From: Octopus bimaculoides
Taxonomy: Eukaryota
Length of the DNA: 39,915 nucleotides
NCBI RefSeq assembly: GCF_001194135.2
Contig: NC_068992.1
Span: 63,453,688 to 63,493,602, forward strand
Direction of reading: 5' to 3'
Part shown: piece by piece, positions 1-31,682 of the stretch
How the letters are laid out: each line of letters begins with the position of its first letter
Numbering within the stretch: position 1 is the first letter of the stretch
Program-made: the position numbers and the translations under genes
Notes under the pieces: model-generated
Told to the model about the DNA's origin: nothing
The model's database searches: none
The model's input: only the letters and a program-made list of their open reading frames with translations

Positions 1-119
1 AGAAGAAGAAGAAGAAGAAGAAGAAGAAGAAGAAGAAGAAGAAGAAGAAGAAGAAGAAGATTATCCAGAACTGGTGACCAGTAATTCTTGCCCTCTAGTC
101 TAATAATAGTGACCATTAA

Positions 120-153
<34 letters not shown>

Positions 154-366
154 GCTGTTGTTGTGGTGGTATGATATATTTTTATTTGTTTAGGGAGGCT
201 CATTCGTTGTAATAAAAAGGACAATCCACCACCCCCGTCGTTATCGAAGTAAAAGGAATTTGATTGGTTGTTATCAAATACTCTTTATCCTTCTAGCTTC
301 ACACTGATTGGAAGAACGAGAACATGCATGTACACATGCGCACACATGTACTTCACATGCACACCT
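1..366 (+). repeat. Copy 1 of a duplicated block (copy 2 at 30219-30638)
   Basis: Same order of (GAA)n, gaactggtgaccagtaattcttgccctctagtctaataatagtgacc, (ATT/GTT)n and ggaggctcattcgttgtaat...ccttctagcttcacactgattggaagaacgagaacatgcatgtacacatgcgcacac. Homology ends at cacatgcacacct. Confidence 0.95.
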
Positions 367-639
367 ATAAATTACATGGAGAAGAAACAAAAGATCATAT
401 CAAATGAATGTCATATAAAACTATTCCGCACATACAGTAACAGCCATACTAGCAATCCCACACCCCTCCATCATCAGCTGCCCCACTGCTGATATCACTA
501 TGGTTTCGACACCTGGGGTAGTACCATTCAATCCGACGGTGTAAACAGCACTAAAATTAATGTTATTTGAAAACAAGGAACAATAAATCATTGGAGAAGA
601 CACAATAAATTATTGGAGAAGAAACAATAAATTGTAAAT

Positions 640-1270
640 ACAAGTAACAGCACAATATGTGGCGAAGAAACATTAAATCATATTGTCACTAGCAACCCAG
701 TCCTGCCTGAGAAGGAATATATTCACAGACACGACAGAGTTGGGACCTATACACATTGGAAGCTATGCCAACATTATGGAATAACAACAGAAAAAAGATG
801 GTATAGGCACACGCCAGAAAAGGTCACAGAAAATGAGAAAGCAACCATAGTCTGGGAAATGCAGGATATAGTTGTCAGAGATCAAGAAAAAATTGCTTTC
901 TAATCGATGTATTAATACCAACAGAAGACAACGGTTCTCTAAAGGAAATGGAGAAACTTTCAAAATACAAAGATCTGGAAATAGAGGTAATTCATATGCG
1001 GAGTCTAAATACAGAAACAATTCTCATCATAGTAGACGCATTAGATATGATAGGGAAAAAAAAAGCATTCAGACGAAATCATAACACAAAAGCAGGACTA
1101 ACAAGTATATAAAACATACAGAAAATAGTACTAGGCACCGCACACATCTTAGGTAAAACATTTTCAATACAGTAACAATAAAAGCACCACAATAAACCAC
1201 AGCACATACCGAAGGTACACCGAGATGCACTCGGTAGTGCAGTGAAAGCACGTGATAAAAATAAGACTTC

Positions 1271-4300: not shown

Positions 4301-4501
4301 TCGGATCCAAAAGACCCTTCTTAAATTCATACTCAACCAGAACTACGAACCCTTCATACGGTAAATCAAAACCATTGAGGTTAAGTCGACCATTTGAAAT
4401 AGATCTTTACCTCTAGTTGTCCCATGCATTGAATTTCTTCCTGAATGTTGAATTTTGCAGTTATTCCACGTATAAATATTGCTATCGTGTGTTTGTACTG
4501 C

Positions 4502-4641
4502 TTTTAGCTTTAGGGTTTTAGGGTTTTAGGGTTAGGGTTCGGGTTTTAGCTTTAGGGTTAGGGTTACGGTTTTAGCGTCAGGGTTAGGGTTTTAGAGTTA
4601 GGGATAAGGTTTTAGAGTTATGGTTAGGGTTAGGGTTTTAG
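4502..4641 (+). repeat. Interstitial telomere-like array (TTAGGG mixed with TTTTAGGG/TTTTAGAG variants)
   Basis: Direct reading. Confidence 0.9.
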
Positions 4642-6859: not shown

Positions 6860-9672
6860 ACTCCAATGGCCTGCGCAAGACCTGTCCTCTGACAGTCAAG
6901 CCCGACTCCTTCACCAAGCCAACAGGAGTAGAGTGAGAAAAGGCGAGTATCTGGCGCTTTCAAATAACCGATGCTCCGAGTAGGCTGTATTCATTAGCCT
7001 TGGATGGCAGGCAGCCTAGGAGCAGGAACACTCTGAGTTCAAAACCAGGGGAGCAAGGACCCCGTCGCCTTGACGGACTACCTTGATAAAAATACCAGTT
7101 AGAAATAACCTAAAACCACACTCCATTTGTGGGTGAAAATGCCAAGCAAAATAAATTACAATAACGGTGTGAACGGGACTGGAACCAATGATGAAGGTGT
7201 CGCACCTGGCAGCGACCTCACTATGCAGTAGGGTGGGCTCCGCCGTAATTCAGCAACTGCTAGGCATACTACAAGTGGAGTAAACAAGTAAATATGATGG
7301 TTATGGAGTATTACTACCAGAGCACTCCAGTGGATGCGAATGGCGTGCCAGTCAGGGCGTACAGAAAATGAATGCACAATGAATGGAAGGCAATGGAACT
7401 CTACGAAATTACTGAACAGAGATTATGTGACAAGCAAGAGCAATACGAAAGAATGGATGGTTAACAGAATTGGACCTAGAAGCTATTAAAAGAAGAATAT
7501 CAGGTGATACTGGGCATGCGAGAAATGACGATAAAAAACGTGAAGGATTTGTCCCTGAGGCTGATGAAAGTCGACTTTTCTTGGGTAAGATATAGAATAA
7601 GCAAGACCAACATAATACTACAGCTGATTGGCTCTGCAGCCTCTAGCAAACAGCTTCTTATCCCCAGTAAGAGGCTATCCACTTCACAGAAGACAGTATT
7701 ATAAATATGAGTGAAAAGATGAGCAGCTGGAAAGCAGCAGGACCTGATGGGGTACAGGGATTTTGGATAAATAAAGTTCAGTAGTTGCCATAAATTGATT
7801 GCAGAACAATTTAATGTATTGATCAATTGAGAAGAATAAATCCCATGATGGTTGAGTAAAGGTCAAACGGTGTTGTGCTTGAAGGATGCATCAAAGGGAA
7901 ATGCTGCTGACAATTACAGACCAATTTTCTACCCCACGTTAATGTAGAAGTTACTGTTAGGAGAAATTGCAGAAGAACTGTATAAATTTCTTGATGAAAA
8001 CGATATATTATCGCCGGAACAAAAAAGGCTGTAGAAGGAGATGCAGAGGTACCAAAGATCAACTATTGATAGACAAAGTGATAATGCAAGATTTTAAGTA
8101 AAGGAGAACAAATCTGGGAATGGCCTGGATTGACTATCGCAAAGCATTCGATATGATTCCACATTCGTGGGTCACCGAGTGCTTAGATCAGGTTGGAATT
8201 GCGAGGAATGTAATGTGTTTCCTGAAGAGAAGTATGGCGGGATGGAAAACTGAACTGGCATCTTACAGAAAAAGCTTGGGCACCTTGGGTATCAGAAGAG
8301 GGATTTTCTGTTCTCCGTTACTTTTTGTTCTCTGCATGATACCCCTAACCTTGATACTTAGGAAAATTAACCTGGGGTACCAACTAAAGGAAAAATGCCA
8401 AACAATCAACCACCTCCTCTTCATGGATGATTTGAAAGTGTATGGCAAAGACGAGACACAAGTGAGTTCCTTGGTGGACACGATCGAATATTTTAATACT
8501 GATATTAGAATGGAATTTGGACTCAAGAAGTGTCGAATATCTACCTAAAAAGAGGCAAGATACAGTCTCTAGCAGGGATAGAATTACTGAACAGAGGCCT
8601 GATTAAGCAAATTGAAACAAACGGATATAAATACCTTGGGGAACTAGAGTTCAACGAAATAATGGGAAAAGAAATGAAAGAGCAACTGAGGACGGAGTAT
8701 TTCCGAAGACTGAGGTTGGTGTTGCGCTCAAAATTGACTGGATGGAATAATATCCAAGCATTTAATACGTGGGTGATAGCAACACTTCGGTATGGAGCGG
8801 GAATTATAAAATGGCAAAAGAGAGAAGTGAAGAAGATGGATACCAGACCAGAGAAATCCTAAGCGTCACACTGATAGGTTGTACTTGCCCAGAAGAAAGG
8901 GTGGGAGAGGTTTGATCAGTTTCCAGGACTATATCGAAGCAGAGGAAAACAGCCTAGGGTGGTATCTAAAATATGCCGTGGTGCCACTGTTGAAACACAC
9001 GAAGACGACTGGCGTCATCAAAACTGAAAATTGTGTAACTAAAGAAGAAATGAACAAAAACAAGAAAGAGAATAAATGGAAAAGAAAATGTATGGTCAGT
9101 TTGCAAGAGATGTGAAGACCAAGACAGATTCAGAGGACCAGTGGCTATGAATGAGGAGGAGCGATCTGAAGATAGAGACAGACGCATTCGTATGCGCAGC
9201 TTAAGAACAAGCGCTAAGGACCAATTATATGACGTGCAGAACTTACAACACTACCGATAGCGACAAAGGCTGAATGTGTGGTGAGAGGGGTGAAACGGTA
9301 TGGCACGTTGTTAGCGAATGCCCGAAATTGGTACAAGGCGGATACAAACGGCGCCATGACAGTGTGGAAAAAATGATCCATTGGAAGCTCTGTGGAAATC
9401 ACGGCCTACAAAGAGCAAAGATGTGGAATTGCAAAATCCTGTGGGATGCAATGATCCAGTACGATCACCCGACAAGAAATTGGAAACCGGATATTGTTGT
9501 GAGTAAAAGACAAAGAACATGTATGATAATCTACATAGCATGTCCCAGTGACAACAGGATCGATGTGAAAGAAGAAGAAAAAATAAACAACTATGATGAT
9601 TTGAAATAGGAAATACGAAGGTTGTGGTCAATGAAGAGAGTAGATGTGATACCAATAGTAATTAGTGCACTT
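6860..9672 (+). mobile_element. Degenerate R4/Dong-clade RLE non-LTR retrotransposon (5' UTR, N-terminal domain, RT, zinc knuckle, RLE; 3'-truncated)
   Basis: Many stops and frameshifts. N-terminal KWSKQVNMMVME.YYQS.P...EQRL...KNGWLTELDLEAIKRR (about 7270-7500). RT motifs KAAGPDG, NYRPI, EQKGCRR, MAWIDYRKAFDMIPHSW, HLLFMDDLKVY (LFMDD 8417-8431), YKYLG and LYLPRRKGGRGL. Zinc knuckle MCGERGETVWHVVSECPKL. RLE motifs RHD, KPDIV and YDDLK. Confidence 0.93.
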
Positions 9673-10039: not shown

Positions 10040-10260
10040 TTCTAGTGATCAAATGTGTGTGCCGTACATTAGTTCACTTCTTCCATCAAATCAACGTTAC
10101 CTGAACAGGTGCACCGTTTAAATCAGGTGTCGAAGTGATCACATAGCAACGTGAGATGAAGTGGTTTGCTCAAGAACACAACACCCACCCGATCTGGGAA
10201 TTGAAACCACGATCTCGCGATCGTGAGTGCAACATCCCAGCCACTTGGCCATGCAACCTA
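10040..10260 (-). mobile_element. tRNA-derived SINE, family 3-related
   Basis: The reverse complement starts ggttgcatggccaagtggctgggatgttgcactcacgatcgcgagatcgtggtttcaattcccaga, a tRNA-like head similar to 23611 and 36532. Confidence 0.75.
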
Positions 10261-10261
10261 A

Positions 10262-10354
10262 TAATAATGATAATAATAATAACAACAACAGCAACAATAA
10301 TAATCTTCAATTCGATATCACATTGTATATTTAGAGTCATTATATTTATTTATT
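10262..10354 (-). terminator. Candidate polyadenylation region of the AstC-like gene
   Basis: Overlapping minus-strand AATAAA hexamers at 10354-10349 and 10350-10345 (another at 10427-10422) lie 80-160 nt after the stop. A GU/U-rich tract follows at about 10300->10262. Confidence 0.5.
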
Positions 10355-10505
10355 CAATAAATTTGGGTTTTGTTTTTTTTATATATATATTTGTTGTAAT
10401 TTTCCTTGTAAATTGAAATTGTTTATTAGTTTGTGATTCCGTCGTGTTTTTTTGGGGCGTTTAGGTCCTGCTTTGATGGTCTCCATTTCATTTCGAATGC
10501 GATCT

Positions 10506-10646
10506 TTACTTCTTCCTCTTCACGCAGGAAATGACGTTCCAAATACACGGATCGTTCTTCTTGTCATCTGATCCATCTGAAGGAAAGGCATCTCGGCTGT
10601 CACGCAACAGTCGGTTCATTAAGTCCCTTTTGCGTGTAATCATGAA
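10506..10646 (-). CDS. AstC: Terminal coding exon of an allatostatin-C-like (AstC/somatostatin family) neuropeptide precursor; predicted mature peptide NDPCIWNVISCV
   Basis: Read by hand on the minus strand. The acceptor ctctcttttttctttcttttatttatttctacAG (AG = 10648-10647) precedes a phase-0 141-nt exon, FMITRKRDLMNRLLRDSRDAFPSDGSDDKKNDPCIWNVISCVKRKK-TAA. The C-x6-C ring CIWNVISC matches the AstC pattern (insect CYFNPISC). It is flanked by basic sites KK and KRKK, with an upstream RKR site. Paralog identity is not established. Confidence 0.8.
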   Translation of the reverse strand, partial: FMITRKRDLMNRLLRDSRDAFPSDGSDDKKNDPCIWNVISCVKRKK

Positions 10647-11190
10647 CTGTAGAAATAAATAAAAGAAAGAAAAAAGAGAGCAACTTAGTAAAATTGGAAT
10701 GAAACACAGACAAAGGAATTCTTACAACGTAAACAACAAAATTTTCGCTGGTAAAAACAAAAGTTCTGAAATAAATGGAGAAATTCAAAAGACCGTCTGT
10801 CATATTTACAGATGTAAGTTTGTGTTTCATGTGCAGCTTTTGACTTTTTCCATCCAAACGTTTTTTTCCTTTTTAACATAATATTTTTACCATTGTTTGT
10901 AGCTTTATTTACTTCGAATTTTACCGTTAAAAAGAATTTGCTTCACGTCTCTCGAAGTTTGTAAATACTTATAACGCATGCATCCTGAAATGTTCGCTGG
11001 TCAGAAGGAAGCTTCTAAAATAGATGGCGATTTGGACTGCTGTAGTATAGCGGCAAAACATCTACCACGTTTAAAGAAGATATGGGTTCGAGTCCTATGT
11101 GAGACTAGGTAGAGCATTTATTGTAAAAAAACAAAGACTTAGAATAACAAGTGAATCACTGACTACAACACATTGTATATATAGATGTTT

Positions 11191-11271
11191 TCGATCTAGT
11201 TTGGATTCTTTGCCATCAAATTTGATTGCAAAGAATTCAAATTTGATGGCAAAGAATCCAAACTAGATCGA
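11191..11271. repeat. Perfect 35-bp inverted repeat with 11-nt loop
   Basis: 11191-11225 tcgatctagtttggattctttgccatcaaatttga is the exact reverse complement of 11237-11271. The arms extend about 10-15 bp further with mismatches. Confidence 0.97.
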
Positions 11272-23065: not shown

Positions 23066-23391
23066 ATATCTTATATTATTGCATCAGTCGTTTCATTAAC
23101 ATAAGGGATGTCTAGCCATATTGACCACTAATATTGTTTCTGCTATCGGTACAAGGCCTGAAATTTGGATGATGTAGAGCTGTCTAGTCAATTACTCCAA
23201 CCCCCACTGCTCAACTGGTAGTTATTTTATTAACTCTGAAGTATATATGGTGTTTTTTAACATAATGCGTATATATAGGAATTTTTCCCGGACAAAAGCC
23301 GCAACCTCTGACTTTTCAATAACGCACATATATTAGGTACGTTACGTTGATAAAGGTTTTACTGTAGAGCTGCTGGCATTGCATAATTAGA

Positions 23392-23510
<119 letters not shown>

Positions 23511-23610
23511 TATCTGTCTGTCTGCTTATCAATCAATCAAGCAAGCAATCAATCTCTATCTTTCTCACTATATATATATGTGTGTATATACATATGTGTG
23601 TGTATGCATG

Positions 23611-23850
23611 ATGAGGCGCAATGGCCCAGTGGTTAAGGGAGTGGACTCGCGGTCATAGGATCGCGGTTTCGATTCCCAGACCGAGCGTTGTGAGTGTTTA
23701 TTGAGCGAAAACACCCAAAGCTCCACGAGGCCCCGGCAGGGGATGGTGGCGAACCCTGCTGTACTCTTTCACCACAACTTTCTCTCACTCTTACTTCCTG
23801 TTTCTGTTGTGCCTGTAATGCAAAAGGGTCAGCCTTGTCACACTGTGTCA
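23611..23850 (+). mobile_element. tRNA-derived SINE family 3 (runs into gap)
   Basis: gaggcgcaatggcccagtggttaagggagtggactcgcggtcataggatcgcggtttcgattcccagaccg has tRNA-like A and B boxes; homologous to 36532-36871. Confidence 0.9.
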
Positions 23851-24372
23851 NNNNNNNNNNNNNNNNNNNNNNNNNNNNNNNNNNNNNNNNNNNNNNNNNN
23901 NNNNNNNNNNNNNNNNNNNNNNNNNNNNNNNNNNNNNNNNNNNNNNNNNNNNNNNNNNNNNNNNNNNNNNNNNNNNNNNNNNNNNNNNNNNNNNNNNNNN
24001 NNNNNNNNNNNNNNNNNNNNNNNNNNNNNNNNNNNNNNNNNNNNNNNNNNNNNNNNNNNNNNNNNNNNNNNNNNNNNNNNNNNNNNNNNNNNNNNNNNNN
24101 NNNNNNNNNNNNNNNNNNNNNNNNNNNNNNNNNNNNNNNNNNNNNNNNNNNNNNNNNNNNNNNNNNNNNNNNNNNNNNNNNNNNNNNNNNNNNNNNNNNN
24201 NNNNNNNNNNNNNNNNNNNNNNNNNNNNNNNNNNNNNNNNNNNNNNNNNNNNNNNNNNNNNNNNNNNNNNNNNNNNNNNNNNNNNNNNNGCTCTTTCCTA
24301 AAAATGTAGCTTGAAGAAATATTCTTGTTATATCTACGAAATATTTGATTAAAAGTATCACACAGACACACA

Positions 24373-24414
<42 letters not shown>

Positions 24415-24436
24415 CTTTTAGAGCCACAACACACAG

Positions 24437-24650
24437 GGCGGTGAGCTGGCAGAATCGTTAGCGCGCTGGGTGAAATGCATAGCAGTATTTCGCCCGTCGC
24501 TACGTTCTGAGTTCAAATTCCGCCGAGGTCGACTTTGCTTTTCATTCTTTCGGGGTCGATAAATTAAGTACCAATGAAACACTGGGATCAATTAAATCGA
24601 CTAGACCCCTCCCCCAAAATGTCAGGCCTTGTGCTTATAGTAGAAAGGAA
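24437..24650 (+). mobile_element. SINE family 1, well preserved
   Basis: ggcggtgagctggcagaatcgttagcgcg...tacgttctgagttcaaattccgccgaggtcgactttgc...gtcaggccttgtgcttatagtagaaagg. Confidence 0.92.
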
Positions 24651-24959
24651 CAATTAACAATACTGGGTTGTTAGAACTGCTAGATAGAGGAACCCCAACT
24701 TCATGAAATCATACCCTATTGTTCTTAAAAACGAAGGGTTATTTGGAGTTACACAACAACAGCAACATCAACCGGTCGTGTAACTTTTGAAATGAAGCAT
24801 ATATTAACATAATCGAAGCTAATTTATTACTGAGAGCCACAGTGGAGTGATAGAAGCCTGTACGGTCTGGTTTCCAGTACTCCCAGGATTTATATTGTCT
24901 AACATCTTCGGGCCGATATAACCTATAGTGAGCCAAGCTATACGCCTTGTTCTATTTAT

Positions 24960-25820
24960 GTTTCGGGTTCGTATCACACTGAGGTTAGAGCTTCCTTCGA
25001 TTCTTTAAAGGTAGATGACATAAAGTACCAGTTAAAAACTGGGGTTCATAAAAGTGTCTGTCTCTTCCACACACACCATTGGAGTCTTAATGCTTGTGAT
25101 TCAATTTTCGCGGTCTGAGTTGAAATGCCGCCTAGATTGGATTTTCCTTTTATTGTTCAGGAGCAAATAAGATAAAATACCAGTTGAAAACTGGGGTCGA
25201 TAAAATAGTCTCTCCTACTCATACAACATTGGAATTTCAGTGTCTATGAGTTAATATTGGCTGCATTTTCCTATAATTCTCCAGTGGGGCGGGGGGGGGG
25301 TAAGGTAAAACAAAGCAACATAGAAAAAAAATGAAGATTGGTCTAAATAACCATATCTTCACCCACTCCCAACAAATGGCGATGTACCAAATTTAGACGC
25401 CGATGTTTGTTTTCAGCAAAGCAATGAGCCGAAAAATCGTTAGCACGCTGGGTAAGATGTTCAGCGGGATTTCGTCCGTCTGCATGTTCTGTGTTCGAAT
25501 TCCGCCGATCTCCATTTTCGCTTTTCATCCCTTTCGGGGTCTATAAAATAAGCCCCCCGAAATTGCTGGCGCAGTGCCAAAATTTGAAATTAATATAAAC
25601 TTTCAGTAAGGAATCGTGCAGGATGAATCGCTAGCACGCCGGCAAGATGTTCTGCGGCATTTTGTCCCTCATCGCGTTCTGAGTTCAAATCACACTGAAG
25701 TCGGCTTTGCCTTTCCTCCCTTGAGGTCTATAAAGTAAGCACTGATTGAGCACAGGGGTTGATGTAATCGACTTCCTGACCTTGTACTAAAATTGCAGGC
25801 CTTGTACTAAAATTTGAAAC
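24960..25820 (+). mobile_element. Four degenerate SINE family 1 copies in tandem
   Basis: Repeated ataaagtaccagtt.aaaactgggg and tctgagttcaaat/ctttcatccctttcggggt motifs at about 24960, 25100, 25425 and 25615. Confidence 0.7.
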
Positions 25821-26519
25821 CTATATTTACATTCAATATTCAAATACTGTTGGAATTAACTTTGTCGTGCATCCTCCTAGGACACGATTACATAAATACC
25901 AGTAACTCATATAGGTTCGATTCAATCGATTACGCCTATCATTTACACAATCGTTATCTGGTGCCAAGGTTAAAAACAAGTGCAGTATGTGATCTAATTT
26001 ATTTATACGGCGTCGTGGAATTTTGGGAGATTAAATTAAAGAAACGACTTTTACTCCAGTAAATCAAGTTATACCTGTTGGTCTAACTAGCGACAAAATG
26101 GCGGAATAGTTCAGAGCGCTGAGCTGCTCCTCTAAGAATCAATAAATTGCACTTTAACACAGTTGTTGCATAGAGTTCGTAACAAAGACGAAATACTGCT
26201 TCTCCACTAACGTAGCTAACTATAAGAGGTACGTATCGTCTGTGATTAGCCACTAAGAGAACATCTATGCTGTGACTCACTCAACCTGATAAAAATAGCA
26301 ACCAAATTCTTCCTCATTTTCCCCACAACATTTAAAAGTAACAATAATAATAAACTTTGGAAAATATAGTTCTACATATATAAATAGTGGTGATAGGAAC
26401 CGTTAACCTTCGTCAGCAGGAAGAACACTATAGAAATTACGAGTGTTAAACTCACTTGTTGAACTGAAGATGGCTGAACAGAAGCGTGTCGAAAGCATGT
26501 ATTTATCAGTGTGGTGCTG

Positions 26520-26669
26520 CATGTATCTATGCATGTATTTATATATATATGTATATATATGTATATATTCATATATGTATGCATGTATATATGCTCATAT
26601 ATGTACGTATGTATATATGAGTACATGGATGTATGCATCTATACATATATGTAAATACTTATATGTATG

Positions 26670-26746
<77 letters not shown>

Positions 26747-27095
26747 TATGTATATATATATGCTTATTCATAAATATGTATACGTATGTGTAGTAATAAG
26801 CACTATACAACTGAAAGCGAAACCCGCAGGTGATGTTATAGTCTCTGCTAGTATCTTCAATTTTATAATTAAATATACGTGTGCATTTATTTAAAAACCT
26901 ATGTATGTAAATATCTATGAATGTACGCACGAAATTATCTATATAAATATGTTTACATTATATATATGTATGTATGGATGTATTTATGTATGTGTGTGTA
27001 TGTATGTATGTATGTATGTTTGTGTGTGTGTGTTTTCATGTATGTATGTATGTATGTATATATGTATGTATGTATGTGTGTATGTATGTATGTAT
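26520..27095. repeat. Long (TA)/(TG)/(TATG) compound microsatellite
   Basis: Direct reading; source of the YIYI/VCVC ORFs. Confidence 0.95.
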
Positions 27096-27662
27096 GAACT
27101 TATATATTGATAATTCTGAACACTGAAGACTTGAACACCTATGAAGATTCATGGAACTTTGATATTTAGTAACATTATCTTTTGGAAATATATTCAATTC
27201 AGGAAAAATCTGGATTAGCTTCATTTAAGTTTGACTAATATGGCCTGTAGTAGTAACTTTCATTAAATCATCCTGTTTTCAGAAACAAGACGTGTACCGG
27301 TAATGCATATAGTTACTTTAGTATAATAATACCGCAAATTGTGTTTTTAATTCAAGTTAACTACACAGAGGAATTACTAAGATTTACTATCTTGATTGCC
27401 GAAGATTTTATCCATAAAATGTCGGTTCGTCTTTTCCTGTTCACGTTGTGAATATACAAATATGAATGTTGATTACGTTGTTTTATGTAGTAGATATGTT
27501 TAAGTTTCGCATGCATTGACGGCTAAAATCTTTGGGTATACTTCATAGTAAAGTTTAGAATGAAAAATAAACAAGGTTGACAAGTCAGAAATTTACATAA
27601 AAGAGAGAGAGAAAAGAGGGAGGAAGATAGATAGATGTGTGCACGCGTATATGGCTGCATGC

Positions 27663-27696
<34 letters not shown>

Positions 27697-29788
27697 NNNN
27701 NNNNNNNNNNNNNNNNNNNNNNNNNNNNNNNNNNNNNNNNNNNNNNNNNNNNNNNNNNNNNNNNNNNNNNNNNNNNNNNNNNNNNNNNNNNNNNNNNNNN
27801 NNNNNNNNNNNNNNNNNNNNNNNNNNNNNNNNNNNNNNNNNNNNNNNNNNNNNNNNNNNNNNNNNNNNNNNNNNNNNNNNNNNNNNNNNNNNNNNNNNNN
27901 NNNNNNNNNNNNNNNNNNNNNNNNNNNNNNNNNNNNNNNNNNNNNNNNNNNNNNNNNNNNNNNNNNNNNNNNNNNNNNNNNNNNNNNNNNNNNNNNNNNN
28001 NNNNNNNNNNNNNNNNNNNNNNNNNNNNNNNNNNNNNNNNNNNNNNNNNNNNNNNNNNNNNNNNNNNNNNNNNNNNNNNNNNNNNNNNNNNNNNNNNNNN
28101 NNNNNNNNNNNNNNNNNNNNNNNNNNNNNNNNNNNNNNNNNNNNNNNNNNNNNNNNNNNNNNNNNNNNNNNNNNNNNNNNNNNNNNNNNNNNGTGTGTGT
28201 GTGTGTGTGTGAGTGAGTGAGTGTGTGTAGTGGTGGGGCATTCTCTCCCGAAAAGCTGAAAGTAACCTACAATGTTTTTTTCTAAAAAAATCTCACGTCT
28301 ATGATCCAAACATGTCAAAAGCTAAAATCTCTCAAGAGGGGCGCTGAGTAACTTAAATGCATATATAAATTCGCCATTAATTACTGAAACAAATCTAATG
28401 TTATAACACATGTCTAATTGATTTATCACAGATGTTTTCATATATCTCTGATATTGTGTTTAGCATCTGTTCCATAGCTAAAATCTTGCTCAACGACTGT
28501 TTATACTTCCTTTACATTATTTCAAATCACAATGTCTGTTCTGTTAGCCTACATTTCACAGAATCTTTTGTACCAGCATTCTTTCATATTATGGTTGGGT
28601 ATAGCTTGAATACCATTGTATCTTGTAATTTGTTTGTCTTCAGTACCATCCTTTCTCCTACTGGCATGTCTGCATATATGTATACATATATACGTGTATG
28701 TATGTATTTGTGTACATATGTATATGTATAAACGTGTATGTATCTACAAATGTATGAATGTATGTTAGTAAAGATGTCATTGTATGTATGGGTTTGTATG
28801 CTTTTACTTATATATGCGTAGTTATGCGTATTCCTTTATGTGTCCATATACTTCCATTCATATGTGTATATGTGTGTGCCAGTATGTATATGCGTATTCA
28901 TGTGTACATATACACTCTCTCTATAGTTGAAGAGATCAATCACCTCAACGGCAACGATTTCACGTATGATTCACTTGTGTGTATGTATATGTATACTTTT
29001 ATGAATGTGTATATATGTATGTATATACTTATATATATATATATATACAATATATTCATATATATATTTATATATTTGTATATACATATATGCATGTAAC
29101 TATATATATGTATATATATATATATATACAATATATTCATATATATATTTATATATTTGTANNNNNNNNNNNNNNNNNNNNNNNNNNNNNNNNNNNNNNN
29201 NNNNNNNNNNNNNNNNNNNNNNNNNNNNNNNNNNNNNNNNNNNNNNNNNNNNNNNNNNNNNNNNNNNNNNNNNNNNNNNNNNNNNNNNNNNNNNNNNNNN
29301 NNNNNNNNNNNNNNNNNNNNNNNNNNNNNNNNNNNNNNNNNNNNNNNNNNNNNNNNNNNNNNNNNNNNNNNNNNNNNNNNNNNNNNNNNNNNNNNNNNNN
29401 NNNNNNNNNNNNNNNNNNNNNNNNNNNNNNNNNNNNNNNNNNNNNNNNNNNNNNNNNNNNNNNNNNNNNNNNNNNNNNNNNNNNNNNNNNNNNNNNNNNN
29501 NNNNNNNNNNNNNNNNNNNNNNNNNNNNNNNNNNNNNNNNNNNNNNNNNNNNNNNNNNNNNNNNNNNNNNNNNNNNNNNNNNNNNNNNNNNNNNNNNNNN
29601 NNNNNNNNNNNNNNNNNNNNNNNNNNNNNNNNNNNNNNNNNNNNNNNNNNNNNNNNNNNNNNNNNNNNNNNNNNNNNNNNNNNNNNNNNNNNNNNNNNNN
29701 NNNNNNNNNNNNNNNNNNNNNNNNNNNNNNNNNNNNNNNNNNNNNNNNNNNNNNNNNNNNNNNNNNNNNNNNNNNNNNNNNNNNNNNN

Positions 29789-29985: not shown

Positions 29986-30218
29986 GGGAGGAGAATGAAC
30001 GTGTGTGTGTATGCAGGTGTGTGCATGCTTGTCTGTATATATGTGTGTGTGTGCATGTGTATGTATGTGTATATGGTAACCTGTAGGTGTATGTGTGTTC
30101 CAAGGTGCGTATATGTTTGTGTGTGAGTGTGTGTGTATGCGTGCGTTAGTGCGTGTGTGTGTGTGTGTGTGTGCATCTGCACGTGTGTGTGTGTGAAAAT
30201 ACAAAAAAGATGATGTTA

Positions 30219-30338
30219 AAGAAGAAGAAGAAGAAGAAGAAGAAGAAGAAGAAGAAGAAGAAGAAGATTATGAAGAACTGGTGACCAGTAATTCTTGCCC
30301 TCTAGTCTAATAATAGTGACCATTAATATTATTATTAC

Positions 30339-30369
<31 letters not shown>

Positions 30370-30638
30370 GTTATTATTATTATTGTTGTTGTTGTTGTTA
30401 TTATTATTATTGCTGTTGTTGTTGTTGTTGTGGTATGATATCATATTTTTATTTGTTTAGGGAGGCTCATTCGTTGTAATCAAAACAAAGGACAATCCCC
30501 CCACCCCCGTCATAATCGAAGTAAATGGAATTTGATTGGTTGTTATCGAATACTTTTTATCCTTCTAGCTTCACACTGATTGGAAGAACGAGAACATGCA
30601 TGTACACATGCGCACACATTTACTCCACATGCACACCT
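30219..30638 (+). repeat. Copy 2 of a duplicated block (copy 1 at 1-366)
   Basis: Direct repeat of 1-366 with few substitutions in the unique parts; the microsatellite tracts differ in length. Confidence 0.95.
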
Positions 30639-31682
30639 GTGAGCATACATGCATGCATAGCCGGATGCACTCATGAACACACAGATGCAGCTATGCATAT
30701 ATATGCTTCAGTGCATACACACGCACACACAAACACATACTTATACACACACACACATACAAACACATACTTAAACACACACACAAGCACATACANNNNN
30801 NNNNNNNNNNNNNNNNNNNNNNNNNNNNNNNNNNNNNNNNNNNNNNNNNNNNNNNNNNNNNNNNNNNNNNNNNNNNNNNNNNNNNNNNNNNNNNNNNNNN
30901 NNNNNNNNNNNNNNNNNNNNNNNNNNNNNNNNNNNNNNNNNNNNNNNNNNNNNNNNNNNNNNNNNNNNNNNNNNNNNNNNNNNNNNNNNNNNNNNNNNNN
31001 NNNNNNNNNNNNNNNNNNNNNNNNNNNNNNNNNNNNNNNNNNNNNNNNNNNNNNNNNNNNNNNNNNNNNNNNNNNNNNNNNNNNNNNNNNNNNNNNNNNN
31101 NNNNNNNNNNNNNNNNNNNNNNNNNNNNNNNNNNNNNNNNNNNNNNNNNNNNNNNNNNNNNNNNNNNNNNNNNNNNNNNNNNNNNNNNNNNNNNNNNNNN
31201 NNNNNNNNNNNNNNNNNNNNNNNNNNNNNNNNNNNNNNNNNNNNNNNNNNNNNNNNNNNNNNNNNNNNNNNNNNNNNNNNNNNNNNNNNNNNNNNNNNNN
31301 NNNNNNNNNNNNNNNNNNNNNNNNNNNNNNNNNNNNNNNNNNNNNNNNNNNNNNNNNNNNNNNNNNNNNNNNNNNNNNNNNNNNNNNNNNNNNNNNNNNN
31401 NNNNNNNNNNNNNNNNNNNNNNNNNNNNNNNNNNNNNNNNNNNNNNNNNNNNNNNNNNNNNNNNNNNNNNNNNNNNNNNNNNNNNNNNNNNNNNNNNNNN
31501 NNNNNNNNNNNNNNNNNNNNNNNNNNNNNNNNNNNNNNNNNNNNNNNNNNNNNNNNNNNNNNNNNNNNNNNNNNNNNNNNNNNNNNNNNNNNNNNNNNNN
31601 NNNNNNNNNNNNNNNNNNNNNNNNNNNNNNNNNNNNNNNNNNNNNNNNNNNNNNNNNNNNNNNNNNNNNNNNNNNNNNNNNN

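Follow-up and report, generated by a model that had tools for sequence, protein, structure and literature searches.

Does the minus strand of an octopus genomic region hold the last exon of a second allatostatin C (AstC)-type peptide gene, and is that gene functional? The question is raised by a 39,915-nucleotide stretch of Octopus bimaculoides DNA (NC_068992.1, positions 63,453,688 to 63,493,602), hereafter the window, by which we mean this whole stretch. From its letters alone, the original prediction had read a hidden 46-codon exon for a divergent AstC/somatostatin-type peptide. We consider it likely that this exon belongs to a divergent and functional AstC paralogue, a gene of two coding exons that encodes a 90-residue secreted prepropeptide. 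It adds a member to a known family and does not amount to a new kind of system; the features of the gene within the window are as follows.

10506 to 10646, minus strand: coding part of the terminal exon, 46 codons plus TAA (10508-10506), an uninterrupted translation that reads FMITRKRDLMNRLLRDSRDAFPSDGSDDKKNDPCIWNVISCVKRKK and then stops
10647 to 10690, minus strand: 3' splice site, ttctttcttttatttatttctacag followed directly by TTC, with the AG at 10648-10647, a long polypyrimidine tract and a branch-like TACTAAG at 10690-10684, ~38 nt upstream
10634-10626, 10562-10557 and 10520-10509, minus strand: the basic sites RKR, KK and KRKK, respectively
10521 to 10556, minus strand: predicted mature peptide NDPCIWNVISCV, with KK before it, KRKK after it and a predicted disulfide from Cys 10547-10545 to Cys 10526-10524
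10547-10524, minus strand: the C-x6-C ring, CIWNVISC, read directly from the sequence
10545 to 10547, minus strand: TGT codon of the first Cys, whose GT (10546-10545) is the counterpart of a weak donor in the O. vulgaris gene model CAI9731370.1
10605 to 10634, minus strand: pro-region motif RKRDLMNRLL, counterpart of RERQLANRLL in canonical octopus AstC, both beginning four residues after the exon start
10330 to 10505, minus strand: 3' untranslated region (UTR), with AATAAA at 10427-10422 (79 nt past the stop codon) and a second signal at 10354-10345
10649 to 29161, minus strand: intron, ~19 kb in the window, with repeats of the short and long interspersed nuclear element (SINE and LINE) types, simple repeats, assembly gaps and colinear blastn blocks
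29162 to 29788, minus strand: assembly gap (a run of N), the expected site of exon 1, placed from its flanks and not visible in the window

The minus-strand exon, its acceptor, the basic sites, the C-x6-C ring and the nearby poly(A) signal were all confirmed at the place where they had been predicted. When the window was simulated 300 times with a first-order Markov model, the expectation for the core motif C-x-x-N-x-[IV]-[ST]-C was 0.1 per window, or 0.003 when a dibasic site had to follow it, and dibasic sites on both sides occurred in 0 of 300 simulated windows. An AstC motif would nevertheless recur by chance, dozens of times, in a genome of 2-3 Gb, so the motif alone is not decisive and the comparative evidence is. 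The exon falls in no repeat family within the window (the output of this search was mostly N runs and simple repeats), and Pfam gave nothing meaningful for either the new precursor or the canonical one.

Relatives of the exon were sought by an exhaustive HMMER search of 1.84 billion representative proteins and by a word-indexed search of 5.8 billion proteins, including those derived from Logan transcriptomes. The 46-residue exon had no match in the word-indexed search, and the exact 45-residue open reading frame (ORF) was not on record. HMMER returned a single strong match (E 1.5e-21), CAI9731370.1, a 161-residue 'hypothetical predicted protein' of Octopus vulgaris whose residues 45-77 match residues 1-33 of the exon exactly. 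A second match (P0002, 1796 residues, E 2.5e-4) is a repetitive, Cys-rich, TSP1-like protein containing '...CVKNVISAH...'; it was judged to reflect low complexity or chance and was dropped. Residues 1-44 of CAI9731370.1, MEHSIYKNMIVLVVLLSVAAVMFEPVQTVPINDERASDLLRWKN, begin with charged residues, continue into a hydrophobic core of 15 residues and end in a polar stretch (MEHSIYKN-MIVLVVLLSVAAVMF-EPVQT..., where MIVLVVLLSVAAVMF is the core). This is the build of a signal peptide, and the upstream signal peptide on which the original prediction depended is thus found, as a putative signal-peptide exon, at the orthologous O. vulgaris locus.

The locus that encodes CAI9731370.1 (L001, 54 kb; OX597825.1, 78.36-78.42 Mb) is colinear with the window over the whole window length, in reverse orientation and at 70-92% nucleotide identity, with colinear blastn blocks that pair window 11336-29155 with L001 32386-10287. 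This colinearity indicates that the source of the window is a different Octopus species. Exon 1 of O. vulgaris (L001 10001-10132) spans 132 nt from ATG to AAT/GTAAGT and exon 2 (L001 34328-34468) spans 141 nt from CAG/TTC to TAA. They are separated by a phase-0 intron of 24,195 bp and give a joined ORF of 90 codons, with the junction AAT/TTC in the context ...TGGAAAAAT/TTCATGATT... A tblastn search of the window with exon 1 returned nothing. On the two sides of gap 29162-29788, window 29155 maps to L001 10287 and window 29791 maps to L001 9865, and O. vulgaris exon 1 lies between these two points. No signal-peptide exon is visible in the window because the position of exon 1 falls in this gap, where exon 1 of the window species would be expected to sit. 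Both annotated O. vulgaris models with this type of exon, CAI9731370.1 and CAI9731369.1, splice in phase 0 at the orthologous or paralogous acceptor. In these gene models the acceptor is used as predicted, although no spliced transcript was seen.

The two species provide a direct view of selection on the exon. Exon 2 differs between the window and O. vulgaris at 3 of 141 bases (window positions 10551, 10548 and 10542), and all three are third-position, synonymous differences that leave the proteins 100% identical. Synonymous divergence (dS) is 0.117, whereas nonsynonymous divergence (dN) is 0 over 110 nonsynonymous sites, at which ~13 changes would be expected under neutrality; the exon 2 protein is under purifying selection. 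Identity between the species falls from 97.9% in the coding sequence to 88-89% in the intron next to it and to ~77% farther away on either side. The 3' UTR is 97.5% identical from the stop codon to the first poly(A) signal and ~78% identical beyond ~10380-10300, and among the O. vulgaris paralogues described below it is 91-98% identical, far above the level of the intron. This conservation suggests a regulatory element, one with no counterpart in Rfam (zero matches on window 10250-10800). The conserved block is shaped like a terminal exon, within which the protein, including RKR, KK, both Cys, KRKK and the stop, is held constant, and the branch motif CTAA and the acceptor CAG/T are invariant in 4 of 4 aligned copies. 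The two Cys and the basic sites to which the original prediction had pointed are identical in O. vulgaris, with synonymous changes only. The divergence of O. bimaculoides and O. vulgaris is placed at about 34 million years in the literature, and a synonymous divergence of 0.117 would suit O. bimaculoides as the source of the window.

Is this conserved gene an AstC gene? The described cephalopod AstC consists of a mature peptide, AVITACYFQAVSCY, released from a 90-residue precursor that is encoded by exons of 102+171 nt with one 24.3-kb intron (bioRxiv 10.64898/2026.02.18.706622). The new peptide is not identical to it. The canonical octopus precursor was recovered from transcript contigs as MHTQTLVCLFLLLTCSSMFIQAMALNEVIPKGEL/SELSRERQLANRLLHRLLDVAYETFRDYGGTENELKEIQRKRAVITACYFQAVSCY, with its ORF at 340-612 of a Logan transcript contig (L002, SRR29271458). 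BLASTP aligned the new and canonical precursors colinearly (residues 5-85 against 1-89, 22.3 bits, E 4e-4). The best local block, ITRKRDLMNRLL against LSRERQLANRLL, scored 36, compared with 18.3 +/- 3.4 for shuffled sequences (7/20,000; p 3.5e-4, exon 2), and shuffling of the full precursor gave p 1e-3. The block begins at exon 2 residue 3 in both genes (FMIT-RKRDLMNRLL versus SELS-RERQLANRLL), and the motif R-x-R-x-L-x-N-R-L-L, which is common to both precursors, stands four residues past the phase-0 intron. Given the published exon sizes (102+171 nt), this equal spacing from the boundary implies that the phase-0 intron lies at the same point in both genes. Assignment as an AstC paralogue, which had been proposed from motif resemblance, is therefore now supported by precursor homology and an intron position common with canonical octopus AstC.

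Published traits of ASTCs are a six-residue loop, an Asn in the loop, an aliphatic first loop residue in molluscs and annelids, a C-terminal position and, in spiralians, a single phase-0 intron (PMC9048919). The ring CIWNVISC fits these traits, as it has a six-residue loop with Asn third after the first Cys (Cys1) and Ile first in the loop, and is C-terminal. The gene structure fits as well, with one phase-0 intron in the pro-region and the peptide wholly in the last exon, and so does the layout of the precursor, which is short (90 residues) and carries a single C-terminal peptide and, in the O. vulgaris orthologue, a putative N-terminal signal peptide. There are three departures from the family: Trp at loop position 2, Val after the second Cys (Cys2) and KK in place of KR. 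An extra Tyr or Phe after Cys2 has been listed as a shared AstC feature (PMC5996578), but ASTCs have no strictly conserved motif (PMC9048919), and Val after Cys2 is therefore treated as a departure and not as an exclusion. Across the protostome phyla the loop Asn is conserved, the one exception being the canonical cephalopod peptide, where Gln takes its place (bioRxiv 10.64898/2026.02.18.706622).

Set beside canonical OvAstC, the new gene likewise has a 90-residue precursor with a signal peptide (putative in the new gene), one long phase-0 intron (24.3 kb versus 24.2 kb for the new gene in O. vulgaris) and a lone peptide at the extreme C-terminus with a C-x6-C loop that ends in [IV]-S-C. Overall identity, however, is only ~22%, and the canonical exons of 102+171 nt compare with 132+141 nt in the new gene. 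The ring CIWNVISC contrasts with the canonical CYFQAVSC in that it keeps Asn where the canonical peptide has Gln, with Trp for Phe and with Val for Tyr after Cys2. The N-terminal site is KK instead of KR, and the new peptide is followed by a KRKK tail, whereas the canonical one ends at the stop codon. In addition, the new gene is tandemly triplicated in O. vulgaris, unlike the single canonical AstC, and its precursor was unseen among transcriptome-derived proteins, while the canonical precursor is present in many transcriptome runs. The common 90-residue length and the similar introns (24,195 versus 24,304 bp) are treated as coincidence, as the exon boundaries are 30 nt apart and the sequences differ throughout. 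The canonical OvAstC gene is on chromosome 12 (bioRxiv 10.64898/2026.02.18.706622); canonical AstC was not found within L001 or the window, and in the protein collection it comes only from transcript contigs.

The closest parallels to the ring itself are in bivalves, where AstC of oyster (SHIRCLVNVIACY, PMC4200219) and scallop (GHIQCLVNLVACYamide, PMC5996578) likewise has a loop of six residues that begins with an aliphatic one and has Asn in third place. Five of nine residues are identical between oyster CLVNVIACY and the new CIWNVISCV, with an exact N-V-I. Unlike them, the new peptide has Trp as its second loop residue, follows Cys2 with Val where they have Tyr, and carries a short acidic NDP extension where the bivalve peptides have a basic SHIR or GHIQ; this comparison concerns mature peptides and not precursors. 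A precedent for multiple AstC genes is provided by arthropods, which have several AstC-type genes per genome (AstC, AstCC and AstCCC) with divergent rings and one or two AstC receptors (PMC8514136). These duplications are arthropod-specific and we claim no orthology to AstCC or AstCCC. The SSRP-like peptides and consomatins (apUII CFWKYC and Capitella CIWKVC; PMC9048919) resemble the new peptide in their small C-terminal disulfide loop with Trp near its start, and the new paralogues have a toxin-like trait in their conserved signal sequence and hypervariable mature region. However, the new gene has no WK motif, a loop of six residues and not four, and another exon structure, and nothing points to its expression in a venom gland.

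The O. vulgaris locus contains three tandem copies of the gene (A, B and C), of which copy A is the intact orthologue of the window gene. Exon 1 differs between copies by only 3 nt in 132, and the acceptors are also conserved. Copy B (L001 42753-44545, with exon 1 at 42753 and exon 2 at ~44411) has a 10-nt deletion in exon 2 that puts a perfectly preserved ring-coding stretch, RKNDPCTWNVISCVKRKK followed by a stop, out of frame, with RK before the ring in that frame. It is probably a pseudogene, and would be either a recent one or the product of an assembly error. Copy C (L001 48290-50775) is annotated as CAI9731369.1, a 99-residue protein with a simple two-exon structure that ends in ...RANDDFEAPCLWGDVHCLKMRSRSKGNGDHQSRT and a stop. 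It keeps a C-x-W-x4-C loop (CLWGDVHC) with Leu after Cys2, lacks dibasic sites and has a 9-nt deletion that removes the stop codon. Its peptide-coding stretch is 46% identical to that of copy A, with dN 0.58 versus dS 0.13 over the last 16 codons, where numbers are small, a pattern that may reflect either focal, toxin-like diversification or decay. The C-x6-C ring is thus kept in copies A and C and, at the DNA level, in copy B. No further copy was found within 10 kb downstream of copy C in the ORF list of L004. The left edge of the window has a counterpart close to copy C, whose exon 1 is at L001 48290:

1 to 1268, minus strand: homology to the region that precedes exon 1 in the downstream paralogues (matches L001 47827-46524)

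Part of this edge (window 1-164) is repeated at 30208-30371 with 93% identity (repeat family D18; broader segments 1-366 and 30208-30704), upstream of the gap expected to hide exon 1. This left-edge homology indicates a further copy of the gene that starts just beyond the window.

The path of CAI9731370.1 leads from copy A exon 1 to copy A exon 2, which is cut inside the first Cys codon, then to a transposase fragment and finally to copy B exon 2, so that the protein (P0001) runs ...KKNDP/SEFVLY... into a transposase-derived exon. From its exon path, we read this model as a chimera that fuses two neighbouring peptide genes. The transposase fragment is of the hAT/FAM200-ZBED5 type; the window has it downstream of the gene at 4402-4486 (minus strand), and its counterpart at L001 40979-41137 is the part built into CAI9731370.1 as a coding exon.

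Several observations weigh against a functional AstC paralogue. Exon 1 is unseen in the window itself. The coding sequence is no more conserved than the 3' UTR, and part of the conservation is therefore not protein-coding constraint. Conservation covers two Octopus species only, and the HMMER search found no relative among the proteins of other cephalopods. The homology of the precursor to AstC is statistically modest, as an hhalign comparison of the three-copy profile with canonical AstC gave E 0.017 and a probability of 2.7%. The residue after Cys2 is Val and not an aromatic one, and KK is a less common cleavage site than KR. In O. vulgaris, two of the three copies are damaged or strongly altered (B is frameshifted and C lacks dibasic sites and the stop). 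Finally, a word-indexed search of the 5.8 billion proteins with the full 90-residue precursor retrieved only the two O. vulgaris genome models. The canonical AstC precursor, by comparison, was found in at least 53 blocks of Logan RNA assemblies (at least 24 contigs were read), with run accessions in three number series. Expression of the new gene must be low, restricted or absent in the sampled tissues.

These points bear on several other explanations of the locus. If the gene were a non-functional or dying AstC duplicate, an untranscribed relic conserved through low local mutation or gene conversion, one would expect the missing transcript-derived protein in the searched collections, the 10-nt deletion of copy B, the loss of processing sites and stop in copy C and a 3' UTR as conserved as the coding sequence. 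We nevertheless regard a relic as very unlikely, because nonsynonymous changes number 0 where ~13 are expected while the adjacent intron has diverged by 11-23%, because the ORF, acceptor, stop and poly(A) signal are intact in both species after tens of millions of years, and because identity between species is beyond the reach of gene conversion within a genome. A secreted peptide other than an endogenous neuropeptide, such as a salivary toxin, pheromone or defence peptide of a fast-evolving exported family derived from AstC in the way that consomatins derive from SSRP-like peptides, would account for the conserved signal exons (3 nt in 132) and 3' UTRs (91-98%) around a hyperdivergent mature region (46% between copies A and C; dN 0.58, dS 0.13), and also for the absence of the gene from many transcriptomes that contain canonical AstC. 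This is unlikely, given that purifying selection on copy A is strict between the species (dN 0), unlike in prey-driven toxins, that the divergence of copy C could equally be decay, and that a 2026 survey of highly expressed secreted proteins of cephalopod salivary glands, which used Ast-C and Ast-CC models, reported no AstC mimic. The suggestion in the original prediction of co-option as a salivary or venom peptide is left unsupported by the same screen.

We likewise give little credence to the exon being part of a longer protein, as in the 161-residue CAI9731370.1, where the donor in the first Cys codon would remove the ring and leave no AstC-like peptide. That model does exist in a public annotation, for which transcripts, proteins and ab initio predictions were combined, but in the manner of a typical chimera it runs from the exons of copy A through a hAT/FAM200-ZBED5 transposase fragment (Pfam PF27073) into exon 2 of the copy that follows. 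Its donor is weak (T/GTATCT in O. vulgaris and T/GTATTT in the window), the codons that it skips (ring, KRKK and stop) are perfectly conserved in the protein, each copy keeps its own stop and poly(A) signal, and the neighbouring CAI9731369.1 has a simple two-exon structure. Membership of the protostome SSRP-like/urotensin-II-like peptides, in place of AstC, is hardly credible. Trp at the second loop position and the CIW-x-V start do recall the annelid SSRP-like CIWKVC and Aplysia apUII CFWKYC; however, the Trp is followed by Asn and not Lys, and the loop has six residues and not four. The new gene also has one phase-0 intron and a peptide in its last exon, whereas that family has three exons and a phase-1 intron that splits the peptide between exons 2 and 3, and the pro-region motif and intron offset match octopus AstC, with no cephalopod SSRP-like precursor in the comparison. 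For the same reasons of motif, loop size and gene structure, the label 'somatostatin-type' does not hold in the strict SSRP-like sense. As for a chance ORF with a chance motif, the core motif alone would arise ~0.1 times per 40-kb window and thousands of times per genome, but the orthologue, the signal-peptide exon and the pattern of substitutions already refute this explanation, whose probability is negligible.

If the gene is a functional AstC paralogue, as we favour, how would its product be made and where would it act? The processing sites, the disulfide, secretion, the receptor and expression are elements that we infer from the sequence and from the family. Exon 1, with the signal peptide and the start of the pro-region, would be joined to the terminal exon across a phase-0 intron of 19-24 kb. 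The signal peptide would be cleaved, probably after VQT, which aligns with IQA of the canonical signal peptide. Prohormone convertases would then cut after KK, and possibly also after RKR to give a 35-residue form, a carboxypeptidase would trim the C-terminal KRKK, and a disulfide would close the ring. The predicted product is NDPCIWNVISCV, a 12-residue, disulfide-cyclised and non-amidated peptide that, judging from its family, most likely acts on AstC-type G-protein-coupled receptors. Two AstC receptors and one ligand are known from O. vulgaris, and OvAstCR2 responds to the canonical peptide with 100-fold lower potency (bioRxiv 10.64898/2026.02.18.706622). The authors of that study weigh several explanations for the 100-fold gap in half-maximal effective concentration, and a second ligand is not among them (bioRxiv 10.64898/2026.02.18.706622). 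NDPCIWNVISCV is a candidate preferred ligand of OvAstCR2. A wider scheme can be drawn, which we put forward as doubtful: octopus would have a two-ligand, two-receptor AstC system in which NDPCIWNVISCV is the missing high-potency OvAstCR2 ligand and explains the 100-fold gap, and the tandem array would be undergoing focal, toxin-like diversification of its mature codons between a conserved signal and UTR, making it an AstC-derived family early in neofunctionalisation, the first in molluscs.

The surrounding DNA of the window is AT-rich, repeat-laden and gap-rich, with SINE-like elements, TTAGGG repeats and 14 N runs, and no tRNA genes were found in it. Directly downstream of the exon lies a degenerate LINE-type retrotransposon (window 7400-9650, plus strand), with a reverse-transcriptase domain at 8102-8545 (Pfam RVT_1, E 7e-15). 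This element is common to O. vulgaris, at 85% identity, and so predates the species split. The window also holds an interstitial telomere-like tract of (TTAGGG)n and variants (~130 bp, window 4509-4637). The long intron contains a 30-nt tandem repeat in 4.7 copies (GTTCACCGTCATCGATTCACCGCAGGGAAT, window 22369-22506). A SINE-like element of ~160-190 nt is present in many copies in both orientations, and has dozens of matches in the O. vulgaris locus as well. Its copies in the window include the following.

12976-13351, 13733-14155, 19118-19278, 24437-24650, 25433-25774 and 37830-37999, window coordinates: SINE-like copies

How does this gene stand with respect to what has been described? A survey of 27 mollusc species found a single AstC-like gene per species (PMC8514136), and a 2026 study of O. 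vulgaris, in which genome BLAST gave a single AstC hit, described 'two receptors, one peptide' (bioRxiv 10.64898/2026.02.18.706622). Full-text searching of the literature, both for the peptide strings and for surveys of octopus neuropeptide precursors, retrieved no earlier description, in agreement with the earlier suggestion that the paralogue might be undescribed. As an AstC paralogue the gene is undescribed, its public O. vulgaris proteins being unnamed and one of them mis-modelled. It shows how short peptide genes get lost: it is unannotated in one species, merged with a transposon exon in another and was overlooked by BLAST in 2026. A second conserved AstC-type precursor would add to the known ligands of a signalling system with a proposed role in modulating nociception, in an invertebrate that the law protects, and the new peptide offers a testable answer to the unexplained 100-fold gap in receptor potency. 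Moreover, two features that the canonical cephalopod peptide has lost, the ancestral Asn and an aliphatic residue at the start of the loop, are retained in the new one, which bears on the question of which copy is ancestral.

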